Part shown: piece by piece, positions 2,500 through 64,000 of the stretch | Layout: the number at the start of each line of letters is the position of its first letter | How positions within the stretch are numbered: the stretch's first letter is position 1 | Assembly: GCA_010909165.1 (NCBI GenBank) | Contig: VJWM01000126.1 | Span: forward strand, 248,001 to 312,000 | Direction: 5' to 3' | Source of the DNA: Anthoceros angustus | Lineage: Eukaryota > Plantae > Anthocerotophyta | Length of the DNA: 64,000 bases | Translations under genes and position numbers: made by a program | The notes under the pieces: model-generated | Seen by the model: only the letters and a program-made list of their open reading frames with translations | Told to the model about the DNA's origin: nothing | The model's database searches: none

Positions 2500-3700
2500 G
2501 CATTCATTTATCCCGCCTTTGTTCAAAGGTGCCCTTCTGTTGTGTAGCAATTTCCCTAGCTTGTTGAGTCGCCATGTACTCTTCACTTGTGAGGACCACA
2601 GGATGTTGGAATGCAACTCTCTCCTGGTTTTGTCCTGGTACCACTACATCTGGTGGACAAGAGTCCATCGCTTGCACAAAACGGTCTCGCGAGGTATTTA
2701 ACAAAGAATTTCAATGCCTCGCTGCTCATAGCCCATATCGCACACTGCTTTTCGCTTCCAAAGAATTCGCACATTATCCGCACGCATGCAATCCAAATTT
2801 AATACATTCCAATCCTGGTTGTGTGTTCCTGTATGTGGATGCACACCTACTATTTCCTGCTCTTGGAGTGACAACTGGACTTGCAAGTTATGCTCATTCA
2901 GTCCTTTCCATGTTTCACACTCCTCCTCAAGAGGTAAATTCGCATCTTCAGATGCAGACAAGCTCACAAGAAGATCTGCAACTTCATCCTCTGACTCCAA
3001 GATTAGAACAACTTCATCCTCTAACTCCACAATTGGAATTGTCTGTGTCCCTGCCCGCAGTAATCGTGAATAGACCCGAGCGCATGTGTATCCGGGGCCC
3101 ATTCTTGCCTGTGAGGAAGAGAAGGTCTATGCTATCCATGGCGCTTGACTAAAAGGCCATATGCCGGTCAAACCCTGACGATATTTTTGCCATGGAAAGA
3201 GTCTGCGACGGCCTTTGACACAAGGTTTCCCAAAATCTCAGGTGGCATCCTGCCTCTGTTCCCATGAGCAGCAGCAAGGTACTCCTCCTTCCTCCTTCGT
3301 AAAGCTTGCTTGAAGGGCTTAAAGACAGCAACATCAAAAGGCTGAAGTGCATGGCTTGTGTGGCTAGGCATGCAAAGTATAATGATTCCCCATTCACGGC
3401 ATAATAGCTAGTACCATCCAGGATAAGGGCCGCAATTCATCTATGAGCAGCAGAAGTTTTGGCCCTGGACCCATTCTCCCTACATGCATTGAAAGTGTTG
3501 CGCCACCAAGAATATTCATGGAGTTATGAAAGCATTCTGTTGTTCCAACTCATGACCCATTCTCGCATATTACGCCGCATGAGGTTTGTGGTTGACAACC
3601 TATTTGTGACTCCTTTGAAAATGTACATTCCTGGCAGGTACGCTCCATGGGCATTTCCACATGCTACATATGTCAAGGATTGCTTTACATCACCGAAGTA
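2500..3700 (-). mobile_element. pogo/Fot1-type (Tc1-mariner superfamily, DDE_1-like) transposase remnant
   Basis: Minus-strand fragments MYIFKG..., LILDG.S, MPSHTSHALQPFDVAVFKPFK (ORF 3168-3371) and a later VLTSEEY. These match the DDE_1 'LP.HTSH.LQP.DV.VF.P.K' motif. Truncated on both sides. Confidence 0.8.
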
Positions 3701-53569: not shown

Positions 53570-56500
53570 ATGGTGTCCTTGGAGGAGAAGTGGAACTCGC
53601 CGGAATGGAGAAGCGGTAGGACTCTACGGAGTGAGAATGTGCAGGAAAATACTAGAGGGAAGGGGAGAAAGAAGGGAGCAGAACAGCACCAGAGGCTACC
53701 AATTGACGACCACCGGGTGAAGATTTTGGACCATATCTGCAGGCATCGAGTTACGTTTATCCAGGTACATTTGTGAGTATGCGGTGCATTGTGCATTGTG
53801 CATTGGTTTGCATCACTTTGTTTCAGTTCCTGTGTCGCATCAATTACAGCACTTGAGTGGGCAATGCTCCTCTTTGTGTGGCTGCAGGGAGACCCTGGGT
53901 GCGGGAAGAGCACGGCTGTGCCACAATTTCTACTGGATGATACTCGCCGTCGTGTGGGAGAAGTGAAGGTTGTGGTTACTCAACCACGGCGTATTGCAGC
54001 CATATCCTTGGCCAAACGGGTTGCCCAAATGAGAAATCAGAATGTAGGAGGTGAAGTTGGGTACTGTGTTTCCAACGATCACGTAACAGGTGGAGAGCAC
54101 ACCAGGCTTTTGTACGTGACTAGTGGGTATTTGCTGGAGGTAAGTGCCCTTTTGGACCTGTATGCTGGGCTGCTGTGGACTCGGTCTACAGCTTGCAGAC
54201 TCCATTAATATTGTTCTCCCAAACAAACGTCAGAAGAGGAATCTGTATTGTAGCAGCAGCTAGAACTGGCAGCTGGTGGCTGAATGCCAGCCTTGTTGGT
54301 CATGTGCAGTGGCTTAGTTGTCAGTGGGACAAGACGAGGCCTTTACAAGAATGCATGTCTCATCTGATACTGGATGAGGTGCATGAGGGAACCCCTCAGC
54401 AGGATTTGCTGATGCTCCTTGTGAAAAAACTCTTACAGTACGGCCAAGGAGCCTCCTACAATGGCTTCCCCAAGATCATCATAATGTCAGCGACACTGCA
54501 AGTGAAGCCTTTCCGTGACTACTTCGCTGCCCTCTCTCAGCAGTTCAGCATCAGCAAGAGAGGCTCCGATGGACCAACCATCCCGGCTTGCATGGACGAC
54601 ACCTTGCATGTTGGAGCGAATAGATTTTCTGTGGACATAGTTTTTCTGGAGGAGATTTTGCAAGCCATCCCGACCCTTAGTACTGGAGGGAAGGAGATTG
54701 TACGAAGGCTCCTCAAATTCCCAGCCAACGGTGAGTCCTTTCCCAATTTTGCATACCCTCTTGTGGTGCACCTTGTGAGCCAGACTGCAAAGGTGGGGGA
54801 TGCAGTGCTAGTGTTTGTGCCTGGCCTGGTCGACATTGTTCGGCTGCAAGAGGAATTCAGACGCCAGTCAAGTGGAGCAGGAGAAAAACGTTTGGAAACG
54901 TTCTTGTTGCATTCCCTGCTTGAGAAAGAAGAGCAGGCGGCGGTGCTGCAGCCACCGTCTCCAGGTATTACCAGAGTATCATGTCACTAGACACACTTCT
55001 TCTCAAACGAGGGAGTGGTAAGCATCTGACCAAGGCTTTGGAACGGAACCTCTTGCAGGAGCTGCCAAAGTAGTGATTGCCACAGACATTGCTGAGAGCA
55101 GCATCACCATCCCAGGAGTCAGATTCGTGATTGACATGGGAATGCAGAAGACCATGTCTTTCGACAGGTCTGTCGGGGTTGAGAGGCTGTCCTGCTCCTG
55201 GTGCACAAAAGCTTCTGCAACGCAAAGGGCTGGGAGGGTTGGTCGTCTCTACCCAGGCACAGTGATTCGCCTGTACACCCGAGAAAAGTATGATCATTTC
55301 CAGGCAAGCTGCTTTTCCTATAACCACCTGATTGTAAGTGCTGAAGGTGGTGACACGAGGGACTCTGGTCTTTCCATATCTACCTTGAACTGGTCCTTGC
55401 AAGCATGTTTTTGTTTTCCTATCTGACACCAGTTTCCAGGACTATGCTGTGTCCAAAATTCGAGAAGAAGAGGTTGAATACGCCTTGCTCAAGCTCTTGA
55501 GCAACTTTACCGCGTTTGGCCCACCTACACAGCTTATTCAAGAAACGATAAACCCTCCTGAGCCAACGCTGGTAGTCGATGCTATGAGAGCTCTGAGAAG
55601 TGCAGGAGCCTTGATTTATTCCGATCAGAACAACTTCTATGATGCTAAGCTTACAACAATTGGACGCTTGGCCAAATGCCTGGCAGGCGATGTGAAGGTG
55701 GCCAAGCTTGTGATGAATGGTCTGGTCCTGAAATGCTCACCTGACTGTATTGTAATGGCAGCAACATCGGAAACTGAGAAGGAGGACATATTCAATCGCT
55801 ATCAGATCCACCAGAGCCAAAGGTAACACTCATATTGAATCCGACCTGAAACCAGCTCACAGTCCTATGACAACCGTAGATCAATCTTACATTTAAGGCA
55901 CTGTTTTACTGTGCACAGTGATCCCCTGAAGCACCAACAAAATGTGTGTGACTCCTTCAAGATTAGAAAGAGGTTTGACAAGGGCCATTATAGTGAGCTC
56001 CTAATGTACCGCCAAGTATATATCGAGGGTCAGCGAAATCAATTCAGCAGAAAATGGATGGAGCAGAACCACCTAAGCTTTGCTCGCTTCCAACTATTCA
56101 CTTGGAGGATTGCAAAATATGCCAGAAACGTTTCAGAATTCCTTCAGGGCCACAATTTGTCAGAAGGAATGAGTTTCGAGCTACAGAAGCTCAGACTCCT
56201 TGCGCAACATGGGAAGGGCTACACGTTGGATTCATTTATATTCCGAGAGGACTTGACAATGGTTAAGCTTGCCATTACTGCAGCATTTATAGACTGCCTG
56301 GTTATCGGGGATGTTGCTAACAGTAGGCAAGCAGTGAATGAGCTGAAAGAACTAGAGAAAGCAGGACTTCCTCCCTCCTCCTCATTCAGGTTGAATGGAC
56401 TCGATTCAACTCCGGTGAATGTTGAGGAGCTAGGCAAAGTGCTTCAGGTATGCTATGTCAGATCCAAGCCACAGAGTGTTAGAGCGTAGTCACCTGCCAC

Positions 56501-59500
56501 CAAAGTACTGGACATGATGATGTATCACCTGCTTGACTCGCACGAAAATGACTGTGTTGTTGGACCTGTTCAGGTGATAGGACCCGTTGCTAAGATTGTA
56601 CGAAGTCCAACTCAAAATGGAGCAGCTCTAATCCAATGTTACGACACAGGAAGTCACAGAAACTGTGCTGAGTTTGTCGTCAAAGACCTTCCCGAAAGTG
56701 GCCTGTTATTGTTTCATATGCCGAGAGCAGTCACCTCCAAACGCACAACGATAGTGCATCTTGCTGGGCAAGACGGATGCAGCGAAAGACACATAGGCCG
56801 ACCCTCTAAAAGCAGGCAAATTAGGTGGTCTACCACACTCAATGGACACACCGTCAAGGTGAAGTTTGACAGCAGCAGCATACAGGAGCCAGCGTTCGAG
56901 ATGAGGACAAGGGGAGAGGTAAACTTTCATCTTGGTGTGGCTCGCCAACTCTTCGGGACAACTCTAAAGGACAAAGTAATCGCACACTATGTAACCATCT
57001 TGCCATCTCAAAACCTGTTCTCAGTCCTGGCTATATTGCTATGTTGGCCTCCAGGGGAACATGGTTTAGAGCTTCGAATGGATACCCGTAGCCAGAGGGT
57101 CTACTGTGTCCGGATAGGGCCAAGACTGAACCTTTCCCTGGCACCTAGGTACCTCATCTTAAAGCAACTTGATCTTATTGAAGAAGCTCGCATCAAAATG
57201 CAGAGAGTGATGGCGGGTGCACCGGTAGAGGGAAATCTTGAGATGGACATAATGAAGATCCTCATGTCTGATTCAAATCAGAAGCATCAACCCGTAATGG
57301 CCCCACAACTAGGGCCTTGGGTTGGGTATCTCTTTGTGAGAAGTTCCCAAGAATGCAAGGTGAAGATTTCAATGGACGGTGCAAAGCACTTCAACAGTGT
57401 CCACCAAGGAAAAGCGGGTAAAGCTGCCCAGCAATCAGTAAAATCGGTAGCACCCCTACATGTGCCTTCTGTGGAGAGTATGTCAACCAAATCCAAGAAG
57501 AACACTTTTGAACAGAAAAGGGTTTATATTCCTAAGGGCACTGGGGCAGGAACCAACCGATTGCAGCAAAACGTTAAGGAGATACTTGCTGACATATCTT
57601 CAGACGAAGTAGTCCAGAGTTCTGGACAGTCCGTGACTGGAGCACAAAGTCCTCTGCTTATCCTTTGTATAGATGAATCAAACTACGATGCAACCCAGAA
57701 AAAAGTCCCAGTCCTTGACTCACTACCCACGGAAGACATGGCTAGCATGCCCCATGAGTGTTCTAGTGCAGCAACTGACCGACTGCAGCAAGGAGTTAAG
57801 GAAGCACTTGCTGATGTGTCTTTAGATGAAGTAGTCGAAAGTTCTGAACATTCCGTTAGTGAAGCATGTAAACCACTTCTGCCCGTGGAAGACAAGGCCA
57901 TCATACCCAATGAGTCATGGGACAAGGCTACCATATCGAATGACCTACGCGAGATTCTAAATACAGTTACACCCGACATTCAGACCCTGCACACTGCTTT
58001 CCAGCTGGTTGATCCAAGTCTCGGCCTGCAGATGGTGCATAATTGGACTTCAGGGGAGCGGTCGCATAATCAAAAGTTTTTCTCTCTATTAAGGGAGTTG
58101 GTCCTGATGTACCAATCAAGACAGGGGAAATCATTGGACTGCGATGTTCCGTCTGTTGTAGAGATCGTGCATAAGGAGAAACGAAAGCTTGTCAACAACA
58201 AACAGCAGGTACAGAATCGTTCATCATGATGTCTGTGAATGACCAGCCCTGGTATGCAAACTGTCCAGCTGACTAACATTGTTTGAAAGTGCAGATGCAA
58301 GTCGAAACATGGTACCACTCACTATGCAATCCGGACAAATCAGAGATGATGCCATTGACCACTTGGGGCACCGCTCCAGGTGAAACAGTGCAAGTTGACA
58401 AGCAAGAAGCTCAGTCATTCATCAGGCAACCAAATGCCACTACAATCAGCAAACAGCTTTCACTCACTCTACATCAGAGAAGCTTTCTTCTGAAGAGGTT
58501 GAAAAGTCAGCCTGTTCCTCAGGTGGACATTTCTGTTCCTAATGTGGCATCCAAAAGCAGCTTAGTGATGGTGTTCGGACCACCCTTGCAAGTGGAGAAG
58601 GCTTTGCAGTGGATCAGGTCTACGGTTCTTGAGCACAAGCCAGGAAAATGGGCAAGTAACAAGACATATTTGGACTCCCAAGACAGGCACCAGAGGATTC
58701 ATTTTGTGGCGATAAGTCCCTCTCGAGACAGGCTGACTGCATTAAAAGAATATTCAGAGTGTGTTCTACAGCTGGCTCAAGGAGCTAGTTGCCCTTTGGA
58801 TGTCAAAGCTCCATCCCTGTACCTTCCTGAAATCTCAAGGGACTTTGATGATGCTCTGCAGAAGGTGAACCCGGGGACAAAAGTGGAGATGCAGGGGAGG
58901 CTCGGAAGGATAATTTTCAGCCATAGGGAAAGGGAGAAGGACTCTTTACCATATGACTTCAGTCAGCCACCAGACATCTTCATCCGTCTTTTGTCAGAAA
59001 GAAAAGTGAACAAGCAGCGGTTTGATGACACAATCGAAAGTCAGGAGTTTGGCTACCTAAGGGCAGCCCTCTCCGTTTGTCGCCCAAAAAGAATCTTCAG
59101 ACAACGGTCCGTCGTTCTGCTGGTGTCCAGTTTGCAGAGGCAATCCGAAGACGAAGGGGTGAGAAAGCTTACCATAGTTGAGTCTGACAGCCAACCAGGG
59201 AAACATATTTTGCAGTTTGTGCAACAAAGAGAAAGACTTGCAACAGCAGACATCGTTCGACTACATGCAGGAGCAGTACATGCAGACATACGAGTTTCTA
59301 TGACGGTACGTACTTACAGAAAGATTTCTCCAGTTTCCAGAAACGAGAGACTGCTTGTCCCTGCTTGATATAAACTCTGTTCCTTGATGTTGCAGACCAC
59401 AGTGCAGAAAGGAATGACGAAGGAAGACCAAGAATTTGTGAATGGTATCGAGAGAAGAGGTGCTGTGCTGTGGTTTCCACCTCTACCCTATGTAGTGCAC

Positions 59501-62500
59501 ACCCAAAGGCTAAAGGAAACGGAGGTATTTTTGTTTAATGAGTTGAAGGTCACTTTGGCTGTAGTCACCCAGGCACGTGGTGGAGGAGACTCATGGATCA
59601 AGAATGAGGTGGAGTTTGAGGCCGTGGATCCCAATGGAGATGGCTCCACTTTGTTTGTGTCACGTGGAAGTGTGGGAGAAAGAATGGAATTCCTCCTGAG
59701 AGATATCCAAAGCATGTGTACCGAGTTCTGCTTGAAATTTGATGAAACAATTACCAAAGACTTTGCTGGGAAACTGCTGTTGCACTGGAAGATGCAGTAT
59801 GGAAATATCCCACGGCTCCGCAAGCTGCTTGAACTTGGGTTGTCAAACCCAGAGGACAAGGGTGGTGACTCTGCTCATCAATTACCTGCACCACCGGTCA
59901 GTCAGGGTTATGAGCGCAACACTAACAATAGTAAGCTAGTTTGTGACCTTGTGGAGCACCTGCATCACTTTGATGATTGCATCACGGCCAGAGATGATGT
60001 TGCTACAACTGAATTGCTTATTGCAGTACTTCAAACACTTCATTCTATGAAATTCTTGCTTGCCAAGGGTGTACAGGAGAGGGCTTGGTTGTTGATAACA
60101 AGTAGTGAACTGCAACCAAAAGTTGCCCTCCGGTACGCCTGTCTCGTTCCAAGAGATTGCTATTCCAAACATTATTGGGAGGAGGTTCTGTGTCCTTACC
60201 TGTGGCAAATGGAGCTTGAGCAGCAGCATGAGGAAGCTGACGAGCTAATCTCATTTCTTGGCCTTCAGAAAAAGACGATGAAAGCAGTTCTGAATGACCT
60301 GGCACTTGGCCCCAGCTTGAATAACATTTTCTGCTCCCTCCGACGGTTGATACACACTAACAATGCTCATCAGTTCATGGTAGTTTTCACACACACTATA
60401 GAACAACAGGTGGCAATCCCTCCACGGCATTTGGAGGGAAATATAAAAAAGGTTCTCTGTCATCATGAAGCAAGAGCTGCTGAATTTGTTCTACTATGCT
60501 CAGAGTGGTTTCTGCAAACTTCAGAAGGCAAAGGAGACATACATCACAAGTCAACTCTTGTGTGGTTGATTGAAGTGATCAAAACGCTGAACGTCCCAAT
60601 CAGTGAGGAGTGCCGTTTGCTTGCATTGTCGCAACTGATGAAATTCGCACCAGTGGGGATGGAAGCTCAAGAAATTGAGGACAAGATATTCAGTACATAT
60701 CAAGTGGACGAAGTTCTATACAGAAACGAGCATTATCAAAGAATTCTGAAGAGCCTTCCACTCTGTCATACACATAAAGAGGTATATTAAGAAACACATC
60801 AAGTAGCACATGAGGTCAATATTTCAGGGACCAAATCCCTCACTAAGACTTGCCTTGTTGTACACACTGTAGGAGTTGGTACGCAGGGGCCTTGCACAGA
60901 GACAATGCCATATGTTCAAGACTTTACATCCTGGACATCGAGTCAAAGCAAGCTGCCTTATTCCTGGTGTAAATAGAGGTGGAGACCGATTGATAGGAAG
61001 CCCTGGAATCCTGATTCCTGCTCGAGACCCTACAGGTCAAATAACTGGTGCCCAGATCAAAGTTGACAAAGTCAATAGTGGGAAGTATATTTGGTGGAGC
61101 AGTAAGAACGAAGGAGGGAGGGGGCCCCGAGTGCGTGAAAGTTTGCCTTTGTTCTGCTGCATTCCAGAAGGACATGATTGTGCAGTTATTGGACTTTGTG
61201 AAGGTAAAACATCGTTGTCTCTATTGACAGTGAGCTGTCCCTGCCCAACCTTTGGTTAGTCGTCGAAGATCTTTGAGAGACAACTGTTGAACAGAGGCTG
61301 CACCTCAGTAAAATCAGTATTGGGGGTTTACCTGGATTCTTTTCGCTGCTCCCAACCAAGCTTAGTAACACACCTGCTACATGCAATGCAGGAGGCCTTA
61401 AAGCACATGTTGCTGCAGCCTTGAGTGGACTGCCGATGATTGGAGCTTCTGGAGCTGCATTCCCACAATCAAGGAGCTTACTTGAGACATACCTGGCAAT
61501 GCTAAATCCCACACAGATACTCTTCTTTCCAGATGCAGGCTCAACAAACAATGACCAGGCAAGTTCCAATGCCCTTCATCTCTATCGTATATTGCTTTTC
61601 AGTGTGAGCTTGTAAGAAGAATGTGCCTTTCGTTCACAGGTAACACGGAGCTACTTCCACACATTTCGACTACTTCGTGAATGGAATTATGATTTTCTTG
61701 TTGCATGGTGGGGCCAAGTGAACAAGGAAGATCACCTTGATATCGATGACTTTCTCTGCACAAGTGAGTCTGCAGAGGAAATTCCTTTATTGTCAGAGCG
61801 CCAATTTTGGCAGCTCATCAATCCAGACGTCAAAACCAAGTTAGACGAAGAATTTTCTGAGTTGAGCAAGCCTTGGGAAGTTCATGTTCAGCCCCAAGCT
61901 ATAAATCTGGAGGAAACATTCACAGACACTGATGACATAAAAATCACAAGAAACCCGGCCTCGGTAGGGTGCGTGCATACTCAGAAGTTCTTGATATCAA
62001 TCCCCAAAGCCAGGATGATGAGGATGCCAAACTCACCAAATGGATATGTAACACCTTCTTCTGTGAAAACTTTCTCCATAGAGGCCTTTATGGTGTTTGT
62101 GAACGATTTGCAAGAAACAGATCTACTGATAGAGTGGTTGGTGCAAGAGGAGAAGGATGACAACGCTATCATAGGGCTGGACTGTGAGCATGACCCTGAT
62201 GGTGCACTCAGACTCATACAGTTATCTGTTCACAGTCGATGTCTGCTTATTCGCATACCTTGCTTGACATCTAGGCACCTGTTCCAAGCTCCTATCAGGT
62301 ACACAATGGGGACATGTTCTGCCAGGTTCCATGTTGGATTAGGTTGCTGCAAATGACGTACCTACTTCTGGAAGTGGCTTGCAGGCTCTCAAGACTCCTT
62401 GCATCTGTAACGTACATCAAAACTGGAGCGGAAGTCCACAAGGATGCCCTGGCTATCTTCCACACCCTGGGACTTGTGGTCAATGGATGCAAGAACGTAT

Positions 62501-64000
62501 CCCATGTGTATCGTAGTAACAATCTTACGAGTAGCATGTCAAAGATATTCAGGTGAGCAGCTAGCTTGTCGAGTACTTTCTCATTTTTCCCTGAATCCCC
62601 GCACGGTCACGTTGGGATGTAGAAAAGGGCAATCTCTGTCAAGTTTCTGCATATTGCTCTGTCCTGGACTTCAATGTTACGAGGAGAGGGACATTGAATA
62701 AACCTAACACAGCTTGAGGCAGGGACTTGTATGGCTGGGACTGGAAAAAGGAAAAGTCTGTAAGCTGCAGTCGTTGGGGCAGTGACTACCTATCACTAGA
62801 ACAGGTTTGTCCCAAGAACCTGGTGACCTGGTTTGGGCTCAAAGGGGTGGTCTACGTTAGCAAAAGCAACCTGCATGGGGCTGCTGCAACCGGTACTGGA
62901 TTAACTAGTGGAAAGTGCCTTGTCCAGATAAAGTACGCAGTCATTGATGCCTGGGCATCTCGCATGATATCACTTGAAGGAAGAGCTTCAGAGGAGGGTG
63001 CCATTCCTTTGGTATCCTTGCAAGATGTTCCCATGGAGGTGCTCGACATTTTTACAAGATCAATATCACACTCTGATGCTCTTAAGAAGGAAGAAACAGT
63101 AATCGAGGTCAGAGGGCAACATATTTTACTGGAAAGCATAACAGCATCAAGAAGTTTTTATCTGCTAGGCTTTCAGCTCCCTTCTGATTTAATCTATCAG
63201 AATTTGCTTGCTCAACACTCCTGCCAACTGTCTGCATGTGAGAATCCTCATACCCATGACTGAGGTGCTTGTGTGTAAACTGTGCATATCAGGGGGAGGG
63301 AAATATCATGGCGATTAGCTGTGGGACACTCCGACTGCAACAAACTAAGTTCCGGTCTAGAGTTCTTGGGATAAAGTCTTCAGTTGAGATTAATTTTAAA
63401 GATGGCCAGGAACCAGAAAAATATGCTGCCACAGCACGGACAGGGAAGACAGTCACCTTGCACCGAATATCAACTTCAGCACCTACTTCTGAAGCTGACA
63501 CAAAAAAATCAGGTACATGTCATTGAAACAAGCATTTTTACCTGCCTCGATGTTACAAGGGTGATAATACTAACAGTGGTTTACACGTTCACCCAGCAGG
63601 ACAGTTCCTGGATGTTGCTTCAATCAGCAGCATTGTTATCGACAACCGAAAACACGCTAACATGCAGAAAAAGAAATTGGACGAAGCTCTTTATGGCGTA
63701 CTTTGTGCACCAGCGAAGTGCCCAGCCCTCTTACTCCGTGCACTACAGTGTAGTAACATCCAGGCAGACAACGTCGTGCCCAATGAATGGCCCTCGAGGT
63801 TGATGGCACTACAGTACATCTCTGGTGCTCTGAACAACTCTCAATGTAAGGCTTGGGAACAGATCTTGACATCTCATGTCTCAGCTACTATTGGCCCACC
63901 AGGGACCGGAAAAACAAGGCTCATTGCAGCAGTCACCAAAGCATGGGATGAATTAGCGGATGAGGGGCAGGTTTTACTTTGCACCGCTTACCAAAATGTG
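53570..64000 (+). CDS. Giant multidomain nucleic-acid enzyme: DEAH helicase - RRM-like - KH-like - CYTH-like - helical - TOPRIM (CyRepA1-like) - DEDDy exonuclease - UPF1-like SF1 helicase; 3'-incomplete at window edge
   Basis: Phase-consistent exon model: 53570-53764, 53888-54139, 54310-54964, 55059-55303, 55440-55822, 55919-56447, 56574-58208, 58295-59305, 59396-60781, 60873-61203, 61392-61558, 61640-62298, 62385-62552, 62723-62804, 62928-63107, 63293-63512, 63600-64000 (8499 nt, no stops). Motifs: GDPGCGKST, TQPRRIAA, DEVHE, MSAT, ATDIAESSIT, QRAGRVGR; LDCE, KDA, YAVID; LNNSQ, GPPGTGKT, CTAYQNV. Confidence 0.85.

Follow-up and report, generated by a model that had tools for sequence, protein, structure and literature searches.

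A cyanobacterial-type DnaG primase core, possibly kept as an active module, inside a giant spliced gene of hornworts, liverworts and ferns

We analysed a stretch of 64,000 nucleotides from the hornwort Anthoceros angustus (contig VJWM01000126.1, positions 248,001 to 312,000 of the forward strand; hereafter the window), which carries part of a giant nuclear gene. Inside this gene, four exons encode a domain of ~250 amino acids (60722-61813, plus strand) that is probably a DnaG primase core of cyanobacterial type, captured once and possibly kept as an active nucleotidyl-transfer module in a giant plant protein. An earlier reading of the letters alone (the sequence-only reading) had described a cyanobacterial plasmid-replicase-like TOPRIM domain in a plant gene, and the affinity it proposed was borne out: the spliced domain matches a 1248-amino-acid protein of the CyRepA1 family from the Acaryochloris plasmid pREB2 with 36% identity over 237 amino acids (122 bits), and this alignment (residues 122-356) runs unbroken over all three splice junctions.

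Exon 2 alone (110 amino acids) matches cyanobacterial plasmids in a tblastn search of 72,556 plasmids, with E-values from 2e-9 for the best match to 1e-5, and several of the coding sequences under these matches are annotated as 'plasmid replication protein, CyRepA1 family'. With the whole domain, 84 plasmid records match at E ≤ 1e-5, and the ten commonest genera, Synechocystis included, are all cyanobacterial; 269 Bacillus plasmid records, which appear among the exon 2 matches at E up to 10, were set aside, the commonest genera at E ≤ 1e-5 being cyanobacterial. A HMMER search of 1.84 billion proteins with exon 2 gave 95 matches at E < 1e-3, two of which are long plant proteins; the remainder are mainly bacterial-type proteins of ~1000-1400 amino acids that match near residues 120-290, or fragments of such proteins. 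The E-values are 1e-24 for plant orthologues, and 8e-15 and weaker for bacterial proteins. The best bacterial score for the whole domain (158 bits) belongs to protein P0005, whose cluster includes a Leptolyngbyaceae protein; a second score of the Acaryochloris 'CyRepA1 family' protein is 106 bits. In GTDB (one genome per species), searched with a 10-sequence alignment (the wider family alignment comprises 44 sequences), we identified 56 loci, of which 6 are labelled 'uncultured bacterium' only and all those with a named taxon are cyanobacterial (Nostocales, Coleofasciculaceae, Leptolyngbyaceae, Microcoleaceae and others). Every named match of the profile search was also cyanobacterial, and the same holds for every named prokaryotic relative found. 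A phage origin was dropped because a phage collection gave one weak match, at 26% identity.

The similarity extends to individual residues. Conservation of 85% or more across 36 bacterial homologues marks 29 alignment columns, of which the window keeps 28 and departs from one, with Asn for Gly in a loop. The kept family residues are R, KY.W.SS, P, EG.LK, DAG..N, WWGQ and D.D; near-invariant bacterial polar residues are kept in all five plant sequences, and the motif blocks named in the sequence-only reading are all present in the 44-sequence alignment. At the level of sequence, these comparisons support the assignment of the domain to the cyanobacterial branch of the DUF3854/CyRepA N-terminal family. 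In two members, a Sphaerospermopsis plasmid protein (L001:5563-9744) and P0017, the TOPRIM half gave a second, weak and partial match behind the first domain (residues ~368-421), which hints at a degenerate tandem domain copy in some cyanobacterial proteins.

The exon structure was established by comparing the window with RNA contigs from three runs (X1, X2 and X3). Contigs of X1 match the window with 0 mismatches and have all three domain introns removed. The domain starts in the last part (60704-60781) of a long upstream exon, at ~60722 (RNEHY...), where the Acaryochloris alignment begins; RNEHY... corresponds to the first helix of a helical hairpin that precedes the primase core. Intron 1 (60782-60872; 91 nucleotides, GT..AG, phase 0) follows ...HKE and is supported by an RNA joint at 60779>60871. 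By homology and alignment, exon 2 (60873-61203) contains the RRGL helix and the N-terminal subdomain of the primase core, up to CEG; it carries the DnaG-like motifs GILIPARDPTGQITGAQIK and GKYIWWSS (Lys at 61083-61085, Tyr at 61086-61088) and the TOPRIM Glu of CEG (61200-61202). Intron 2 (61204-61391; 188 nucleotides, GT..AG, phase 1; RNA joint 61201>61390) lies within the Gly codon that follows CEG. Exon 3 (61392-61558) encodes the TOPRIM centre, with an invariant Lys (61400-61402), the Asp of PDAG (61532-61534) and an Asn (61550-61552). Intron 3 (61559-61639; 81 nucleotides, phase 0) follows ...NDQ and shows an RNA joint at 61555>61637 in both X1 and X2. According to the alignment and the structural model, the first part of exon 4 (61640-61813) supplies the last TOPRIM strands and the closing strand and helix of the domain, with the motifs WWGQ (Trp at 61709-61711) and DID (61739-61747). 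The three introns are those delimited from sequence alone, and the TOPRIM Glu and Asp and the DID motif named there are all present; that the third intron is of the GC..AG type had escaped notice, and its donor is a strong one (cag/GCAAGT), spliced in RNA of two species.

Further X1 joints lie at 59306-59395, 62299-62384, 62553-62722, 62805-62927, 63108-63292 and 63513-63599. The frame that opens at 59384 runs without a stop across all three introns of the domain, and with the nine RNA-supported introns removed the frame is open from 58283 to 64000 (1539 codons, 0 stops). A single X1 contig of 2968 nucleotides begins at 60064 and reaches the end of the window, with the domain, the exonuclease behind it and the beginning of the helicase all on this one contig. 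Taken together, the open spliced frame and the RNA joints show that the domain is expressed from a spliced nuclear mRNA whose coding sequence continues into an exonuclease and a helicase. Two related species (~90-95% identical) show the gene in their RNA contigs as well (X2 and X3). One of these, X2 contig 6 (window 60545-61555, ~91% identical), retains introns 1 and 2 and has intron 3 spliced out, and every listed indel in 60545-61555 falls inside intron 1 or intron 2.

Long proteins with the domain were identified in the liverwort Calypogeia and in the ferns Ceratopteris richardii and two Adiantum species, and two more plant contigs from public read archives bear it (L060, liverwort-like, and L061, fern-like); this phyletic range is a lower bound. 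The spliced domain of the window scores 287-306 bits against the plant proteins. Within the 1539-amino-acid part, identity between the window and the liverwort and fern proteins is 52-68% in the domain and 15-35% in the flanks, 40-58% of the domain is invariant across all four compared proteins, and the exonuclease is less conserved than the primase-like domain, which is the best-conserved stretch of this part. Because the domain is more conserved than its flanks, the comparison points to purifying selection on the primase-like domain itself.

Curated family models describe the domain poorly. PF12965 (DUF3854) matches neither the plant domains nor their closest cyanobacterial relatives at E ≤ 1 (tested on P0112:2157-2427 from Calypogeia fissa, P0005:132-422 and P0003:83-365) and is present just in remote members found by the profile search, a miss that we attribute to incomplete coverage by the model, without concluding that the domains stand outside the family. 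Whole orthologue and bacterial domains gave a sub-threshold SAM_SMF match only in Pfam, and Pfam and NCBIfam gave 0 matches on the separate exon translations and upstream open reading frames of the window. NCBIfam NF042913 (CyRepA1, ~590 amino acids) covers residues 416-1004 of the Acaryochloris protein, which is the helicase part, downstream of the shared domain. Since PF12965 does not match and NF042913 is confined to the helicase, the primase-like core of this branch lies outside every curated model; to this extent the CyRepA1 label of the sequence-only reading is corrected. When the whole of P0112 was compared with full-length bacterial relatives by blastp, only the N-terminal domain of the latter was shared, with no counterpart of the NF042913 helicase, and hence the CyRepA helicase is absent from the orthologue.

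The cyanobacterial family is modular. Its member P0109 has a canonical DnaG CHC2 zinc ribbon directly ahead of the domain, and P0006, P0050, P0028 and P0009 have the CyRepA1 domain (NF042913) behind the core, P0028 also matching Herpes_ori_bp (UL9-like). CyRepA1 and CyRepA2 have been described as an N-terminal DUF3854 (Toprim-related) domain followed by a C-terminal DEXDc domain (PMC10079941). Taken together, the zinc ribbon of P0109, the helicase domains of the other members and the DnaG fold described below indicate that the bacterial family consists of primase-helicase replication proteins, of which the plant domain would be the complete primase core. The best-scoring relative, P0005, has by Pfam and NCBIfam neither a zinc ribbon nor NF042913, and carries a C-terminal LacI-type helix-turn-helix.

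The structure was predicted with AlphaFold2 from the 44-row alignment for the domain of the Calypogeia orthologue, which is ~60% identical to that of the window (pLDDT 94.1, pTM 0.92). Solved DnaG RNA-polymerase domains are the best matches to this model (Foldseek E 2e-8; VIA Z 16-17), led by that of B. subtilis (Z 17.2, 241 of 271 residues aligned). T7 gp4, T4 gp61 and Twinkle match at Z 11-13, and the TOPRIMs of topoisomerases and RecR match the second half only (residues ~134-263, Z 8-9). In AlphaFold DB the best clusters are named 'DUF3854 domain-containing protein' (TM 0.87), and a language-model search agrees. An hhalign comparison with E. coli DnaG (E 9e-5) aligns only motifs II-IV, including Glu265, and pairs the DnaG RGL helix, '(M)FPIRD..G.(V)IGFGGR', 'KYLNS' and 'VEG' with 'IFIPARDPSGKITGGQIK', 'KYVWLSS' and 'CEG' of the domain; beyond Glu265 the correspondence to DnaG residues is one of aligned ranges. 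The sequence profile searched against the PDB finds at best small TOPRIM proteins (E 0.17), in which CEG aligns with vEG and DAG with DAD. As in TOPRIM domains, a Glu follows strand 1 and an acidic motif follows strand 3 of a Rossmann-like fold. The DnaG fold over 241 of 271 residues makes the domain more than a TOPRIM: the model identifies it as a complete DnaG-type primase core, composed of the N-terminal subdomain and the TOPRIM. The earlier description as a TOPRIM domain is thus right for that part and too narrow for the whole, a DnaG-like RNA-polymerase domain. Of the acidic set, the domain has the Glu and the last DxD; its central motif, D-A-G, offers one Asp, and an invariant Lys occupies the position 4 after the Glu.

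A maximum-likelihood tree of 66 rows places the five plant sequences in one clade (98/91), in which the window branches first, then Calypogeia and then the ferns. Plants and all named cyanobacterial rows form a clade of 54 rows (100/100), separated by a long branch from other bacterial rows, and the plant clade does not fall inside Nostocales. The plants group with cyanobacterial members at the level of this clade, and their placement inside it is weak. For the introns, we compared the window with Calypogeia genomic DNA (L062) and, for ferns, with the Logan contig L061. All three have introns 1 and 3 at the same position and in the same phase; intron 2 is present in the window only, being absent from Calypogeia, L060 and L061. 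Introns 1 and 3 being common to window, liverwort and fern, the capture appears ancient and single, and the sequence results would mean a single capture that predates the split of hornworts, liverworts and ferns, with vertical inheritance thereafter and losses elsewhere. The source may have been a crown-cyanobacterial plasmid, the plastid ancestor or an organelle-borne mobile element. In the 860-nucleotide intron of L062 that is equivalent to window intron 3, a stretch of 24 amino acids (L062:11986-12057) resembles the residues that flank the exon junction, with 70% identity, and may be a duplicated micro-exon or an alternative exon.

We propose that the plant gene took up only the primase core of a cyanobacterial-type replicon, at a time before the divergence of hornworts, liverworts and ferns. 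The core would then have gained spliceosomal introns, two of which are still common to these lineages, and would since have been more strongly constrained than the remainder of the protein. The putative active site of the family is retained in the Glu of CEG, the Lys, the Asp of PDAG, the Asn, the DxD and the KY motif. The domain may act as a metal-dependent nucleotidyl-transfer module that makes primer-like RNA on single strands, with the flanking SF2 and UPF1-like helicases (superfamilies 2 and 1, respectively) exposing these strands for the core and the adjoining DEDDy exonuclease trimming 3' ends. By analogy, the relationship to DnaG together with the zinc-ribbon-bearing bacterial members makes metal-dependent synthesis of short RNA on a single-stranded template the most likely chemistry of the family. 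The fuller statement that hornworts, liverworts and ferns possess a catalytically active nuclear RNA-priming module of cyanobacterial plasmid origin, lost in seed plants, we put forward as tentative. If it is true, these plants have an undescribed nucleic-acid machine of ~3300 amino acids with two helicases and an exonuclease, which might, for example, re-prime or copy single strands in genome or organelle maintenance, or defend against mobile elements.

Several observations weigh against an active, captured primase core. The structure is a prediction for the liverwort orthologue rather than for the window protein itself. No zinc ribbon was detected by Pfam at E ≤ 1 in the 466 amino acids upstream of the domain in the window, and of the 33 Pfam families matched by P0112 the best 25 do not include PF01807 (CHC2); DnaG-type primases need a zinc-binding domain for de novo initiation. 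DnaG has a DxD and a second acidic residue after the Glu where the domain has one Asp and a Lys. With no zinc ribbon found and fewer acidic residues than DnaG, the domain should be called an active primase only with caution. We know of no biochemical activity for any DUF3854 domain. CyRepA1 and CyRepA2 have been established as replication proteins by genetics only (PMC10079941). The backbone of the tree is weak, the approximately unbiased (AU) test does not reject a tree in which the plants are the sister group of all cyanobacterial rows (p = 0.49), and the taxonomic spread is drawn from lower-bound searches.

One alternative is that the domain is no longer an enzyme and serves as a single-strand nucleic-acid-binding or scaffold module. 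The primase-like domain of metazoan Twinkle and DnaG in the archaeal exosome are analogues. The lack of a detected zinc ribbon, an acidic constellation reduced in comparison with DnaG and the vicinity of an exonuclease and RNA-type helicases would all suit such a role. However, inert derivatives usually lose near-invariant polar residues, whereas every such residue of the bacterial proteins is kept in 5 of 5 plant sequences, and no other part of the region is as well conserved as the domain. We consider a non-enzymatic role rather unlikely.

The AU result also means that what we describe as capture from a cyanobacterial plasmid could have happened earlier or by an indirect path. The domain could be an endosymbiotic inheritance from the plastid ancestor, or could have arrived via mobile open reading frames of organelles (morffo2), either of which would need many later losses. 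Besides the sister position of the plants, two matches in AlphaFold DB, A0A7S2SH99 (38% identity) and A0A4D9CI33, may be eukaryotic, judging by their accession prefixes. On the other side, no algal, moss, lycophyte or seed-plant protein was found in exhaustive or word-based protein searches, and no organellar open reading frame is among the named matches. The fern plastome ORF531 is morffo2, which is scattered over the organelle genomes of many non-flowering plants and algae and has its best matches in cyanobacterial 'DUF3854 domain-containing' proteins (PMC6220310, PMC10823028, PMC13000998); since 'P4-family primase C-terminal' proteins are among its matches too, the helicase half may be the part to which morffo2 corresponds. 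An origin of this kind is unlikely.

It is quite improbable that the domain works not as a polymerase but as a nuclease of the TOPRIM kind known from OLD, Gabija GajA and RNase M5-type enzymes. The TOPRIM Glu and acidic residues are kept, the profile has weak matches to small TOPRIM proteins, and the gene context is one of nuclease and helicases. Yet the full N-terminal primase subdomain, with DnaG-like motifs II and III, is conserved, which TOPRIM nucleases are without, and non-primase TOPRIM structures cover only half of the domain. A recent horizontal transfer into the hornwort from its Nostoc symbiont, the donor route named in the sequence-only reading, is very improbable. Nostocales plasmids are among the good tblastn matches, but the same domain lies in the same giant gene of Calypogeia and ferns, two introns share position and phase across the three lineages, the plant clade is monophyletic and outside Nostocales, the top bacterial relative is a Leptolyngbyaceae-type protein, and the base composition of the domain equals that of the rest of the host gene, with no anomaly. 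Of the proposed capture, the cyanobacterial branch therefore stands and the hornwort-specific symbiont route is not supported. Bacterial contamination or a chimeric assembly join, for which nothing speaks beyond the bacterial affinity of the domain, is excluded for a spliced, expressed nuclear gene, to the point of being negligible: three spliceosomal introns (the argument already made from sequence) are removed in RNA, the 2968-nucleotide transcript contig runs through the domain into eukaryote-type exonuclease and helicase exons, and orthologues occur in three other plant genomes and in two plant-derived read-archive contigs.

The domain lies in a host gene that occupies 53678-64000 of the window (plus strand) and runs off its end, as delimited by tblastn of P0112 against the window, Pfam matches on P0112 and the open spliced frame. 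This segment is collinear with residues 47-2975 of the Calypogeia protein (3343 amino acids), and the order in the host gene is an SF2 helicase, a long middle part, the primase-like core, a DEDDy exonuclease and the start of a UPF1-like SF1 helicase. In P0112, Pfam places DEAD/Helicase_C at residues 224-610, a 3'-5' exonuclease (PF01612) at 2547-2673 and AAA_11/AAA_12 (UPF1-like SF1 helicase) at 2919-3298, and the primase-like core lies at 2162-2422. The DEDDy 3'-5' exonuclease domain of the window (62140-62804, plus strand; motif DCEHD...) comprises three exons and is supported by PF01612 in P0112, by collinearity and by the splice joints. The start of the UPF1-like SF1 helicase (63870-64000, plus strand), with the P-loop GPPGTGKT, is cut by the window end and is supported by the open frame and by AAA_11/AAA_12 in P0112. 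Between the N-terminal helicase region and the core, ~780 amino acids (58283-60700) match no Pfam family and show just 15-40% identity among window, liverwort and ferns. A search with the exonuclease-linker part of P0112 gave matches limited to Calypogeia and two metagenomic proteins. The environmental proteins P0218 (1839 amino acids) and P0219 (2004 amino acids), which have a 3'-5' exonuclease, an AAA_11/AAA_12 helicase and PF24851, are weakly related to this part (E 3e-11). Neither gives any indication of a primase-like core, and both may derive from a module akin to the ancestral host.

In full-text literature on DUF3854, CyRepA1, and primase or Toprim domains with horizontal transfer in land plants, neither the gene nor the domain in plants is described. 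Reports on horizontal transfer of plant primase or Toprim domains concern Twinkle and P4-type viral primases only, and the sole listed 'Toprim' acquisition is Twinkle; the combination of the core with SF2 and UPF1-like helicases and a DEDDy exonuclease was found nowhere in the literature searched. The gene would be an unusually clean case of a eukaryotic gene that captured a single domain of a bacterial mobile-element protein, in an event dated by common intron positions to before the split of the bryophyte and fern lineages. It would add to plant nuclear genomes a second DnaG-type primase core besides Twinkle, and to the known acquisitions one of cyanobacterial type that spore plants have kept and seed plants have apparently lost. 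For the uncharacterised DUF3854 domain it provides a mutable set of residues conserved from cyanobacteria to plants, and it prompts one to ask whether the MORFFO elements of fern organelles are connected with it.

Among known systems, the N-terminal domain of cyanobacterial CyRepA1 and CyRepA2 (Slr7037 of pSYSA and ORF B of pCC5.2; PMC10079941) is homologous over ~240 amino acids, at 31-40% identity and with scores of up to 158 bits. Unlike these proteins, the plant protein is without the NF042913/UL9-like helicase and has no zinc ribbon found upstream, and its domain, split by introns, lies within a eukaryotic protein that exceeds 3000 amino acids and has other helicases and an exonuclease, whereas that of CyRepA is N-terminal. 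The RNA-polymerase domain of bacterial DnaG (PDB 5guj, 4edg and 1dd9) has the same two-subdomain fold at just 13-16% identity; by comparison, the plant domain has one Asp in place of the DxD and a Lys 4 residues after the Glu, and lacks the zinc-binding and the DnaB-binding C-terminal domains. T7 gp4 and Twinkle likewise combine a DnaG-like core and a helicase in one polypeptide, in plants as well (Z ~12-13), but share no detectable sequence relation with the plant domain beyond the fold, and Twinkle pairs its core with an SF4 ring helicase, whereas in the plant protein a DEDDy exonuclease and helicases of SF2 and SF1 accompany it. The Twinkle gene of plants, AT1G30680, appears in a published list as bacterial-derived (PMC3493653). 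MORFFO elements, through morffo2, are also plant-borne, with best non-plant BLAST matches to cyanobacterial 'DUF3854 domain-containing' proteins (PMC6220310, PMC10823028); they are intronless mobile open reading frames with a patchy distribution in organelle and nuclear DNA, whereas the gene in the window is a fixed, spliced and orthologous nuclear gene.

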